Below are positions 46,401 to 54,733 of a stretch of 64,000 nt of DNA, piece by piece. The stretch spans positions 14,684,642-14,748,641 of the forward strand of contig OZ037770.1 of the NCBI GenBank assembly GCA_964035545.1. The letters are read 5' to 3'. Every line of letters begins with the position of its first letter. Position 1 is the stretch's first letter. The position numbers were made by a program, and so were the translations under genes. The notes under the pieces were generated by a model that was given only the letters and a program-made list of their open reading frames with translations, was not told the DNA's origin and did no database searches. Origin of the DNA: Bugula neritina. Taxonomy: Eukaryota > Animalia > Bryozoa.

Positions 46401-49400
46401 ATGCATCTGCAAAGAATATCTGTTATCTTAGCTCTGATTGTGACCGTATCTTTTGCTTGTATTGAGTACAGGGACTGCTTCACATGTATTAAACAAGCTA
46501 AGAAGATCCGCTTCAACATTCTACCATGCATGTGGTGTCCTCTTTCCAACTCCTGCTTCACCAGATACTCAGGTGAGAGATTCTTAACTGTACCTTTGAA
46601 ACTATACCTTTTAGTCTTTGTGGTGTAATAGTATCTTGTATGCTTGCAAGCTGAAAGTCTTAGGTTTGATTCCCTGTTGAGGCAAATTCATTTTATATTG
46701 ATGATAGGAAATGAAACGATATAAAGTAAGGAATTTAATTTTTTGTTTGTAAATAATATTGTTTTTGTGTCAAATTTTTTAAATATATACAAAGAAGTTG
46801 ATTTATTCCAATAAATTAAGGGGAAAAACAAAAACAATTCTCGATATTATTTTTAAATTATAAATTTTTCTTTCTAATCTAAAAGTTACCTATTTATATG
46901 TTGGAGTTATAAGCATTATGCAAAAAAAATTGTTTTTTTTAAACTTGAAAAGTCATTTGTTTAAAAAAAGAAGTATTTTGCTCTAAAACTAGCGAGGTAT
47001 TTCTTATGAATATTTGAATAGATGTTATATTTTGCCCATCATACTTAAATACCGTAGTATTATATAAACATAGCCATTATTCATGTTAAAAGTTATCTCG
47101 AGTATGAGAGTAAAATATCTCATTAAATGTGTTTGATTTAGTATTCAGTCACTGCCCAGAATCTCTGAGTGCAGTTACTAACGCTCAATGTGAGGCGAAC
47201 GTTGAACCTTCCATGAAATACGACAGCCAACTGGCAGCAGAGCTCGCCACGTGGTCATCCTTGACCTACGTGGATCCCAACATACATGACAAAGCATCCA
47301 TCCAATCAGCTGTCTGGAGCCAGTTCAATGGCACTTACCAGGTGAGAGAACCTTCAAACTGCATATATCGGATACTTTGTAGTAGTAAATTTCAATCTTT
47401 ATAACGATTATAAGCTGTTAATTCATTTCATAAAATTGGCTCGCTAATTTAGTAAAGTTTCTGCTATACTTGAATACAATTTTTGAATTTCATTAGCTAT
47501 TCCTGTTTCTCTCAATCAGAGGAAAGCTTCTTTTGGTGAAATCATTTATTATTGGGTTGTGTGTATAGGAAGATGTAATTTAGAAAATAAGGCTTCAAGA
47601 CTAATTAGAAAAGCAAATTTATATGTCCTCTAACTTAAGCCCTAATATTTTGTTTCAGATTATAGAGTTTTTGAATATTGACTGCGGCTGGTACGTTGAA
47701 GAAGACCGAGTCTGTGGTGTTTTGGTGGCCAGATCCAAACCAGATAATAAAATAGTTGTTGCTTTTGAGAACACTTACTCCCACGTAGCTGAAAGCACTA
47801 AATATGCAAATGCAACACGAAATATCACAAAACTAGACCAGAATAAAAGCTGGGTAAGTTATATACTATATTATCTCTATATACTATATCGCTCTTTTGA
47901 TTGGTAAATTCATTAGATCGGCACCATTCGTCTGTTTGCAGGCCGTTTCAGGACAGGCTAACAGTATAGTAACGCTTTCAATTTTATCAGCTACTATAAC
48001 TAAAATATTGGATTCGGTCTCTATAAACTTATATAATCTGTTTCTAAAGCTTTGCTTACATTTCTTAAAGCTTAAAATGATTGAATGAGGCAAATAAGTT
48101 AAATAGCTCAATTATGTCGCAGCACGTTTTTAGATTGAAAGCGTTTCATTTAGCTCTGATGATATAAAAAACTTATTATATACATAAAGTAGCACTCAAA
48201 TTCAACAGCATGCAAGAGCTCTATAGAGTTTATGTCAGAATGGTCCGGTGCTTTATTTAAGTCATTGAAACCAAAAACAGCCAGTTGTAGAAAAGCTATT
48301 GCATCATAATATATTACTGGTTTGCTGCTTGGGAAAGCTTTAAAAGTACTTTGAAGACACACTTATATAGGGGAGTGAAACACAGATGTAACGATGCTAG
48401 AGTTATGCCCTCTTTAAGGAAAAGGTATGATATTTTTAGGTGATGCCATACTTTGAGAAGATCCACGAAGGGTTGTATCCATGTGTGAAGTCTTTGGTAA
48501 AGGAACTTCTGGATGTGATGCCTACAGCAGAAGTCTTGGTTACTGGACATTCATTTGGTTAGACTCGCTTTGTTATCGTAAATCCCAAAACTTCTTAAAT
48601 TTCCTAAAAAGCAACCAGTTTCTATATGCACTCATATTGATTTATAAATACTTACTTTAATTACTTATTTACAAAATCTGTAACATCCTGTATCAGCTCA
48701 CAACATCTACTATCTTTGCCACTATTGAACTCCACACTTTCCTATCTTGTACCAGATCTACACACTGACTTAAGCTGGTTTCATTGTAAGCTTAATTTAA
48801 CACTTAGCTGTATATAATAAGTAGCCTCATTTCCTACACATAAGATCTTAATTATATATTTCAAGTAACATAAATGATTATAAAACTACACCACTGATTA
48901 CAAAAACTGCTATTACCAGAAATTGTAAGCGGAGTAATATAGATAAAAATTGTGATTTAATGGCCACCAACTGTAGCTAAATTTAGTCTGTGTGCCAGTA
49001 ACATGTATTTTTAGTGTTGCTAAGCCAGCTTTGATAGCCAGTTTGGTGGAAAAGCTACTTAATTGTTAGGTTTGGATGTTGATTTAGTCATGCACTTGCC
49101 TCATAGTGAAACATTTAAATAGATTGAAAGTTGTCTTCTCTTATCTAGATAAAGGTGTGTGTGTGTGTGTGTGTGTGTGTGTGTGTGTGTGTGTGTGTGT
49201 GTGTGTGTGTGTGTGTGTGTGTGTGTGTGTGTGTGTGTGTGTGTGTGTGTGTGTGTGTGTGTGTGTGTGTGTGTGTGTGTGTGTGTGTGTGTGTGTGTGT
49301 GTGTGTGTGTGTGTGTGTGTGTGTGTGTGTGTGTGTGTGTGTGTGTGTGTGTGTGTGTGTGTGTGTGTGTGTGTGTGTGTGTGTGTGTGTGTGTGTGTGT

Positions 49401-51322
49401 GTGTGTGTGTGTGTGTGTGTGTGTGTGTGTGTGTGTGTGTGTGTGTGTGTGTGTGCATATTATTACTATATTTTCTACATTTTATTCTTAATTTATAAAC
49501 TCAGTGGCCAATATTCACATACAGGTGGGGCCCAGGCACAACTGACTGGAGTAAACTTAATAAGGAACAAAGTAGTTGAAAAGAATAAGCTACACATTTA
49601 TACCTTTGGATCTCCAAGAGTTGGGAATAGAGTGTTTGCATATGAATACAATAGAGTGAGTAGATTAACATTTTAGTTGTAATAGAAATTATATAGGTGT
49701 ATTATTACCTGTTCATTGATACGAATAATACATCATACCATACCCCATGTTGAGAGTTAATTTAATTTTCTTCCCTTGTTTGTAAGACATTTTGAAGCTG
49801 TAAAATGCTATTCCTATATTCTTTAATTGTCTGCTATTTCCATTTAAAATAGAAACTTTAACAAATATATTGCAATGAAATAATGATTATAATGTGAAAG
49901 TGAAAGTATGTGAAAGTAAGCCAAAAAGTAAAAGGAAGTTTTCTTACCAACTATATAAAAATAGTTTAATGTTAGCAAGCTATAAGTATAAAAAATCATA
50001 TTTTAAAATGTTCTTAAACAACTTTCTGGAAACTTAGATCACAAAAACTAAACCAGTAGAGTATTAACCGTAATTAAGATATTTTACATTTTCAAATTTG
50101 TAAATTAATTGAAACCAACTGCTGTTTTGATACTTTCTTATTTTTATAGTTATGATGGAGTTGTGTTGTCTTTGCTAAGAATAACGCATTTTAAACTCTA
50201 CGTTAAGTCATTATTCTCTCTACAGTGTGTACAACTTTTGTTGGACTACTACATATTTAGGCATTTCATACCTATTAGCACAATAAGATGAAAATAGAAT
50301 GTGATAGAGTGAGTCAATTAACTTCCTTTGTGTTCAGGCCGTGGTCAACAGCTGGAGGGTTGTGATAAAGGGGGACTTCATTCCGTACCTGATACCAGCT
50401 ACCGAACCTCCATTTTCCTTTCACACGAGGAGAGAAGTGTATTACAGTCGGCCGGGGAATATAGACTCTTCTACTTACTACAGAATCTGCATGTCTAATG
50501 AGGTAAGTCAAATCTCTAACAAGGTAAGTTATAACTCTTATATGAAGTAAGTTGCAACAACTATAATATAAGGTAAGTTAATATTGCTAAGAGTTCTAGA
50601 TTATTAAAAAGTTGTAAGTTTAAGGTGCCGGTTTCAAGTTAATTGTAGTAGGTATTTATAATTTATGAAATTTGCTATAGCTGACATTATTGTAATATAT
50701 GAATTATATATGTGTTATGCAATAGGCCTAAATGAATTTATATATGTTATTCCAATATTATATTAATTTATAGATATTTAAAGCACGCATGGGTGTTCGG
50801 TTTTGTATCATCTTTGTCGCATGATCAACGTGCGGACAAACCTTTTATGATTTTGAAAATTAATAGATATTCTGCATAAAAGAAAATTTTATATTACACT
50901 TATATTATATTGTTTAACAGCATAGTTGTTCGCAACTCGCGCATTTACAGACTGAAAAACAAAGCGGAGTCATTATTCAAGTTCTAACATATCTTTTTAT
51001 TAATAAAGTAATTAAAGTGAACTATTATATTTCAATTATTACTTATAATAGGATTTAAAAATATTTTAGTAATTAGTTGATTAAATTAATTTAATTGTAA
51101 TTAACGTTGTTAACATACCAAGGAGCAAACTCAGAGTATGAAATGTTGCAGCTAACACCAGGCTGTTCAAGGTTCAAGATAGGTGATTCTCCCAACACAA
51201 ACCAATACTTCTTTGCTGACATCACAAAATATATGAAGGCTAAAATGTTTAGCGGTGAAACTCCAAATGGAAAGAAGAGAGAAGGCTGCAGGACCTTTCC
51301 AATTGATAATCTTAAGGGGTAG
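46401..51322 (+). CDS. PSI-like + lipase-like unit 5 (His absent), probably the N-terminal half of a two-domain protein; exons 46401-46572, 47142-47341, 47659-47853, 48440-48557, 49525-49655, 50338-50502, 51152-51318 (or to the stop at 51322)
   Basis: Signal peptide, CMWCP, AFENT, GHSFGG, KGDFIP, NTNQYF. Confidence 0.88.
46618..46688 (+). mobile_element. tRNA-derived SINE-like repeat, family A (diverged)
   Basis: GTGGTGTAATAG...GCTTGCAAGCTGAAAGTCTTAGGTTTGATTCCCTGTTGAGGCAAA. Confidence 0.6.
49155..49455. repeat. ~300-bp (GT)n microsatellite
   Basis: Pure GT run in intron 4 of unit 5. Confidence 0.99.
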
Positions 51323-54600: not shown

Positions 54601-54733
54601 ACCATCATGTTTTGAGCTTCACCATAACAGATATTTCATGTCCAACCTTCCTCTACACATGAGAGAATTATTACAAGAGGGGAAAACTCCAGCTAGCAAT
54701 AAAAGAATGACATGCACGTCCTATATTGTCTAA
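51666..54733 (+). CDS. PSI-like + class-3 lipase unit 6 (intact triad, no own ATG or signal peptide), probably the C-terminal half of a unit 5-6 fusion; exons 51666-51793, 52119-52321, 52539-52730, 52811-52928, 53399-53529, 54061-54225, 54560-54733
   Basis: NSKACDGHRTCGEC...CWWCPLTHTC, AFEGS, GHSLGG, YTFGSPRVG, MHDPAP, LHHNRYF. The first exon starts at a tttag acceptor, with an in-frame TAG upstream and no ATG between. Confidence 0.88.
54262..54325 (-). mobile_element. tRNA-derived SINE-like repeat, family A (diverged)
   Basis: Minus strand GTGGTGTAATAGTAGTGCGCCTGCTTGCAAGCCGCAAGTCTCGTGTTTGAATTCC. Confidence 0.6.

Follow-up and report, generated by a model that had tools for sequence, protein, structure and literature searches.

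The stretch of Bugula neritina DNA analysed here (contig OZ037770.1, positions 14,684,642 to 14,748,641; 64,000 nucleotides (nt), hereafter the window) is AT-rich animal DNA with a G+C content of about 32%, and carries six plus-strand genes of one lipase family at 25.7-54.7 kb (window positions 25695-54733). In this report, we describe the fifth and sixth of these units and present evidence that they probably constitute a single gene, in which the stop codon of unit 5 overlaps a splice donor and unit 6, having no start codon of its own, supplies a second lipase fold. A seventh unit, on the minus strand, occupies the region about 5.9-9.4 kb beyond the end of the window (L004/L005, G000:C6:14754572-14758046). 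Models of the seven units were assembled from open-frame segments, tblastn anchors and phase-consistent GT/AG sites. All seven comprise 7 exons with common intron phases (1, 0, 0, 1, 0, 0) and an open frame of 369-392 codons.

Unit 5 (46401-51322, plus strand) encodes 383 residues, which begin with the signal peptide MHLQRISVILALIVTVSFA and continue through a Cys-rich module into a Lipase_3 core. Unit 6 (51666-54733, plus strand) has 369 open codons and all 12 of its internal splice sites are intact. Exon 5 alone was sufficient for a match to PF01764 (Pfam Lipase_3) above the cut-off of 22 bits in both units (Table 1), the matches of exon 4 being weaker, and Rhizopus and Rhizomucor lipases were the best matches of exon 5 in the PDB. 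The nucleophile elbow, G-x-S-x-G, reads GHSFG in unit 5, GHSLG in unit 6, and is interrupted by intron 4 in both. The module encoded by exon 1 is called PSI-like only, because it scores 17.8 (unit 5) and 17.9 bits (unit 6) against the PSI/plexin repeat PF01437, below the gathering cut-off of 23.1. An Asp is found at a conserved position in all seven units, an assignment made by motif, the PDB search with exon 6 having been blank. The motif H-x-x-Y-F near the C-terminus carries the catalytic His in Rhizomucor and Thermomyces lipases; in the motif alignment, this position is His in units 2, 3, 6 and 7, Tyr in unit 1, Leu in unit 4 and Thr in unit 5. A PDB profile search with exon 7, like the search with exon 6, returned nothing useful.

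Table 1. Features of lipase units 5 and 6 and of the DNA between them (window positions)
Feature	Position	Strand	Remarks
Unit 5 exon 1	46401..46572	+	ATG, signal peptide (hydrophobic core 3.39) and Cys-rich PSI-like module; ends in phase 1
Unit 5 exon 2	47142..47341	+	6.0% divergence from L003, no indel
Unit 5 exon 3	47659..47853	+	Compared with L003
Unit 5 exon 4	48440..48557	+	Closes with nucleophile motif GHSFG, final G split by intron
Unit 5 exon 5	49525..49655	+	Lipase_3 core, PF01764 34.9 bits
Unit 5 exon 6	50338..50502	+	Triad Asp (KGDFIP), assigned by motif
Unit 5 exon 7	51152..51318	+	Ends at proposed donor; catalytic His replaced by T (TNQYF)
Proposed fusion intron	51319..51665	+	347 nt; donor GTAGGC on unit 5 stop TAG; acceptor ctttacttttAG
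Microsatellite (GA)n / (GGGAGAGA)n	51394..51618		Within proposed intron, most of the gap; about 70 nt in related species
Unit 6 exon 1	51666..51793	+	Cys-rich PSI-like module; no ATG or signal peptide; needs upstream 2-nt overhang
Unit 6 exon 2	52119..52321	+	First in-frame ATG of unit 6 at 52193
Unit 6 exon 3	52539..52730	+
Unit 6 exon 4	52811..52928	+	Closes with GHSLG
Unit 6 exon 5	53399..53529	+	Lipase_3 core, 38.4 bits; Rhizopus/Rhizomucor lipases best in PDB
Unit 6 exon 6	54061..54225	+	Asp (MHDPAP), assigned by motif
Unit 6 exon 7	54560..54733	+	His motif HNRYF, stop TAA
AATAAA	54831..54836	+	First after unit 6 stop; likely shared poly(A) signal

The anatomy of the junction between the two units, as described by the first-pass annotation, was confirmed on the sequence in each of its particulars. 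Exon 1 of unit 6 follows directly upon the acceptor ctttacttttAG, and its reading frame opens at 51667, so that two upstream nucleotides are required to complete the first codon. An in-frame TAG lies upstream of the exon at 51628-51630, there is no in-frame ATG and no signal peptide, and the only ATG downstream of the microsatellite (51618) is out of frame and terminated by the TAG at 51663-51665. The exon begins four residues before the first Cys (NSKA|C), which is the point at which the signal peptide ends in units 1-5 and 7. Unit 5, in turn, ends in AAG GGG TAG, where the GT of a phase-2 donor (51319-51320) overlaps the stop codon (51320-51322); an exon ending at 51318 leaves a 2-nt overhang, and among the unit 5 exons this overhang is provided by exon 7 cut at 51318 only. 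When 51318 is joined to 51666, a Gly codon is restored and the coding sequence amounts to 1148 + 1111 = 2259 nt, i.e. 752 residues plus stop. No GT was found at the stop codon of any other unit. The C-terminus of unit 5 extends about five residues past the stopping point of its paralogues, as would be expected after loss of an earlier stop and extension of the frame up to the donor, and unit 5 also lacks two of the C-terminal Cys.

Between the unit 5 stop and exon 1 of unit 6 there are 343 nt, compared with 1915, 1007, 1346 and 1100 nt for the other four plus-strand intervals. No AATAAA or ATTAAA was found between 51323 and 51665, whereas the other five plus-strand units have a poly(A) signal 65-247 nt past the stop. 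The 42 introns of the seven units provided a weight matrix with which the candidate splice sites were scored, the real sites being scored leave-one-out. The donor scored 7.7 bits and the acceptor 6.3 bits, each ranking 19th of 42, at the family median; among all sites at 25-55 kb, the donor is in the top 3.4% of GT and the acceptor in the top 4.9% of AG dinucleotides.

Unit 6 was the sole member of the family seen without its own start. Each of the nine other members examined has its own signal peptide or is a stand-alone gene. A signal peptide of its own is present in unit 7 and, among the three dispersed paralogues, in those at C6:12.39 Mb and C7:2.19 Mb; for the third, at C6:7.55 Mb, tblastn did not pick up a clear one. 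No second start-less unit was seen behind unit 7 or behind the paralogues at C6:12.39 Mb and C7:2.19 Mb. The nearest paralogues of unit 6 are unit 2 (56% identity) and unit 7 (53%), and because both have signal peptides, the loss of the signal peptide in unit 6 is a derived state.

Comparison with a related animal was made possible by three contigs, L001, L002 and L003, from JGI metagenome samples 3300002729 and 3300003318. These contigs are filed as metagenome, yet represent host animal DNA of a close relative, with exons 4-7% different and a synonymous divergence (dS) of about 0.2; such JGI contigs are usable as an outgroup for any gene of this genome, though most are only about 1 kb long. 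Between the window and the related contigs, dS was about 0.18-0.25, which suggests that their source is a close but distinct species or a sibling type. L001 (1241 nt) is colinear with window positions 51194-52629: it begins in the last part of unit 5 exon 7, crosses the gap and takes in exons 1 and 2 of unit 6 as well as a portion of exon 3. Over their shared stretch, L001 and L002 do not differ, and L003 runs from the last part of exon 1 of unit 5 through exon 3.

The arrangement at the junction is retained in L001. The stop codon of unit 5 is TAA in place of TAG, which converts the donor to GG|GTAAGC, a stronger site (10.5 bits); the acceptor, CAG|G, scores 9.2 bits, and there is no change of phase. 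At 185 nt, as against 343 nt in the window, the gap is shorter, and it too has no AATAAA or ATTAAA. Unit 6 again has no in-frame ATG, with a TAA and a TAG in frame upstream of the acceptor. The out-of-frame ATG of the window is absent, and the single ATG in the L001 gap opens a reading frame of 5 codons; a hidden exon has no room in this gap. Since this layout is shared, the start-less state of unit 6 predates the species split and is not an assembly artefact. Collapse of the assembly at the microsatellite was considered and rejected, as independent assemblies of two species agree and the repeat in L001 is short. The DNA contigs over 51612-54760 are likewise contiguous, with no joints and no indels near the acceptor, and their loose ends derive from paralogues.

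The coding sequence of unit 6 is under purifying selection. Compared with L001, its exons show 28 differences in 422 nt (6.6%) and no indel, while its introns show 77 in 497 nt (15.5%) and 57 gap columns (Fisher p = 2.6e-5), the divergence of the exons being 2.3 times below that of the introns. Over the 139 codons compared, none of which is a stop, the Nei-Gojobori ratio of non-synonymous to synonymous divergence (dN/dS) was 0.23 (13.5 non-synonymous and 14.5 synonymous changes; p = 4e-4). The ratio for unit 5 was 0.06 over 189 codons, indicating strong constraint. The flanks of the gap are 27% and 16% diverged, with indels, in the manner of an intron. The constraint extends upstream of the first in-frame Met of unit 6: in the 67 codons preceding it, which hold the whole Cys-rich module, there are 11 differences in 201 nt (p = 2e-4 against introns), every Cys is retained, including the six in exon 1, and the replacements are conservative. 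This conservation upstream of the first Met implies that the Cys-rich part is translated, and hence that an upstream coding exon with a 2-nt overhang is required.

We therefore sought such an exon from the unit 4 stop to the acceptor (45301-51665), scanning for segments that combine an ATG and a hydrophobic N-terminus with a phase-2 donor scoring 4 bits or more. The scan gave one unconvincing match, 47623-47690, which was rejected as an alternative signal-peptide exon; it overlaps unit 5 exon 3 and is unlike a signal peptide.

Taken together, these observations favour a single gene made up of units 5 and 6, in which splicing of 51318 to 51666 would yield a message for a secreted double lipase of 752 residues, and we regard this as probable. 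The single fused transcription unit proposed by the first-pass annotation is upheld to the extent that L001 keeps the sites and phase, unit 6 is constrained and no other start exon emerged, the junction itself being inferred and not seen. Under this proposal, transcription would begin at the unit 5 promoter and continue past unit 5, where the 343-nt gap without a poly(A) signal would allow no termination. The former intergenic DNA (51319-51665) would behave as an ordinary GT-AG intron and be spliced out, its donor overlapping the old stop of unit 5. The messenger RNA would be translated into a secreted chain of 752 residues, which would start with the signal peptide and hold two pairs of Cys-rich module and class-3 lipase fold, connected by a short linker (...PIDNLKG-NSKA...). 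The fold of the first pair would possess Ser and Asp and lack the catalytic His; that of the second pair would possess all three. Unit 6 would enter the secretory pathway only by means of the unit 5 signal peptide.

Two further elements of the earlier proposal hold in part. A tandem duplicate was thought to have been captured as a second domain; the fusion is supported, but the two halves are 43% identical and thus old paralogues, not a recent duplicate, and the locus is likely a conserved fusion of two such paralogues. The pairing of a His-less with an intact domain is consistent with the motif alignment, which has T in unit 5 and H in unit 6. Judged by motif, however, loss of the His is not peculiar to unit 5, being shared with units 1 and 4 and with the paralogue at C6:12.39 Mb.

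Several points weigh against the fusion. The splice is deduced from genomic sequence: the sole public run covering the stretch is DNA, the contigs of which pass through the introns and contain no joints. Transcript-derived protein of this lipase family was not found in searches of protein libraries. When unit 6 exon 2 (the 67-residue region from the Cys module to the core) was compared with 1.84 billion representative proteins, 13 weak or fragmentary matches were returned, consisting of single-exon genomic fragments and one junk repeat protein, with no full- or double-length relatives among them; two of the fragments belong to JGI metagenome samples and led to the contigs compared above. The species comparison covers one related species and unit 6 exons 1 to 3. 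Conservation of the donor amounts to the G at one free third-codon position, because the following TA is fixed by the stop codon anyway. The assignment of the catalytic His draws on motif alignment and general knowledge of fungal class-3 lipases. On the other side, none of the tests in this analysis that were able to contradict the fusion did so. A homologous-protein search for more relatives returned P0001 and P0002 only, and scans of metagenome contigs with unit 5 exon 7 as protein and with a degenerate pattern of unit 6 exon 1 revealed no further species.

Among the alternatives, unit 6 could be expressed as a separate mRNA, either from its own promoter in the AT-rich, TATA-like 45 nt at 51621-51665 or by spliced-leader trans-splicing at 51666. 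Translation from Met 52193 would then yield a non-secreted lipase of 302 residues without the Cys-rich module. Motifs TATATAG and TATATATA are present 20-45 nt upstream of 51666 and have counterparts in L001, and GA-rich tracts are common near promoters. However, four out-of-frame AUGs precede the in-frame Met in both species, and the 201 nt upstream of that Met are conserved like coding exons, with no indel and with the exon 1 Cys retained. The 45-nt stretch itself is 15.6% diverged, as an intron would be, and unit 5 would be left with no poly(A) signal in the gap. The presence of a consensus donor upstream marks the gap segment as an intron rather than an outron. No consistent pattern of trans-splice-like acceptors was found before the ATGs of the other units, and a literature search found no link of Bugula with a spliced leader. 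We consider a separate mRNA unlikely.

The donor on the stop codon could alternatively be a conserved, regulated choice point, giving the tandem protein if spliced and the pseudo-lipase alone if unspliced or polyadenylated early, with the His-less half acting in lipid binding, in anchoring at the interface or as an inhibitor. If true, this would be the first two-fold Lipase_3 architecture in which splicing sets the ratio of enzyme to pseudoenzyme. A switch by intron retention, as suggested in the first-pass annotation, found no support. As the gap contains no poly(A) signal, unspliced RNA would continue into and through unit 6. Because the unit 5 stop would then lie far upstream of six further introns, such RNA is a candidate for nonsense-mediated decay, by our application of the usual rule. 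A regulated choice at this site seems distinctly unlikely.

Another possibility is that unit 6 is spliced to an unrecognised upstream exon with an ATG and signal peptide, inside a unit 5 intron or further upstream, so that separate proteins would be made from overlapping transcripts. Unit 6 is clearly coding and needs an upstream phase-2 exon, and short signal-peptide exons are hard to see without RNA. The scan described above, however, gave a single match that does not resemble a signal peptide, the signal peptide and the Cys-rich module are on one exon in all paralogues, and the L001 gap offers only its 5-codon frame, all of which make a hidden exon quite improbable. That unit 6 is an untranslated, 5'-truncated relic, its start destroyed by microsatellite expansion and its splice-like sites coincidental, fits the missing start codon and signal peptide, the microsatellite exactly at their expected place and the want of expression evidence in a DNA-only public record, but is very improbable given the dN/dS and the exon-intron contrast reported above, the lack of any indel or stop in 139 codons, and the 369 open codons and 12 intact internal splice sites persisting although the start was lost before the species split (dS about 0.18).

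Several observations were made on the surroundings of the two units. A 20-codon out-of-frame reading frame runs from the first ATG in unit 6 exon 1 (51683-51745; L001 327-389), and its start and stop are kept in both species; this conservation probably merely reflects constraint on the overlapping coding frame. Unit 7, which is in the opposite orientation to the array, has its own Met, signal peptide and His motif and is 70% identical to unit 2. The dispersed paralogue at C6:12.39 Mb (L006, G000:C6:12390800-12400700) has a GHSDG elbow, Ser in place of the catalytic His (SNQYF) and its own signal peptide; the further dispersed paralogues are those at C6:7.55 Mb (minus strand) and C7:2.19 Mb. 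In three of the seven cluster units (1, 4 and 5) the catalytic His, as assigned by motif, is gone, replaced by a different residue each time, and all have open frames, which has the look of a pseudo-lipase family that is being maintained. Long microsatellites and minisatellites abound in the introns and spacers of the array (window 49155-49455, 39702-39836, 43496-43582, 41764-41983 and 28752-29114). Intron 4 of unit 5, for instance, contains a perfect (GT)150, units 3 and 4 have (TC)n in introns and 24 copies of a 9-nt unit in the DNA between them, and intron 6 of unit 1 carries a 10/30-nt repeat.

If the splice joining units 5 and 6 is real, annotations that show two genes, a stand-alone pseudo-lipase and a start-less fragment, are wrong. 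The locus would then provide a clean, datable example of a tandem duplicate becoming a second domain, by a route in which the terminator and the signal peptide were lost, an intron took the place of the intergenic DNA, and a donor was built on the old stop. It would also represent a natural pseudoenzyme-enzyme tandem, in a lipase family that is His-less in three of seven cluster units and one dispersed paralogue. This route of protein evolution is already known, and the value of the locus lies mainly in annotation and as a test case.

Units 5 and 6 resemble the class-3 lipases of Rhizopus, Rhizomucor miehei and Thermomyces, and feruloyl esterase A, in matching PF01764, in the GHSxG motif and Asp-containing strand and, for unit 6, in H-x-x-Y-F. 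They differ from these in being animal proteins with an N-terminal Cys-rich PSI-like module, in the missing His of unit 5 and in the two folds per chain of the proposed product. Among the listed matches of a phrase search of the literature, no two-fold Lipase_3 protein was described, a weak negative. Two-domain enzymes that arose by tandem duplication and fusion, with one half degenerate, include the mammalian 100-kDa hexokinases, the JAK pseudokinase-kinase pair, the D1-D2 domains of receptor tyrosine phosphatases and somatic ACE. As in tandems of the hexokinase and JAK type, the proposed product would place a paralogous pair in one chain, with one half missing a catalytic residue and the other intact; in the unit 5/6 product, it is the degenerate half that would come first.

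The short same-strand gap and the strong acceptor immediately before the unit 6 coding sequence are reminiscent of the spliced-leader operons of nematodes, flatworms and tunicates. In contrast to these, unit 6 has no AUG of its own (none in frame before 52193), the gap contains no poly(A) signal, and an in-phase consensus donor lies upstream. Conjoined or read-through genes, in which adjacent same-strand genes are joined by cis-splicing (PMC2953495), provide a further comparison. Units 5 and 6 are similarly adjacent and on the same strand, and could be joined in frame through canonical sites that are kept in L001. Most described conjoined genes, however, are minor isoforms of genes that also work alone, whereas unit 6 is start-less in two species and its fusion would be obligate and fixed. 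What appears to be particular to units 5 and 6 is a Lipase_3 fusion that is apparently obligate and conserved, with its donor on the old stop codon.

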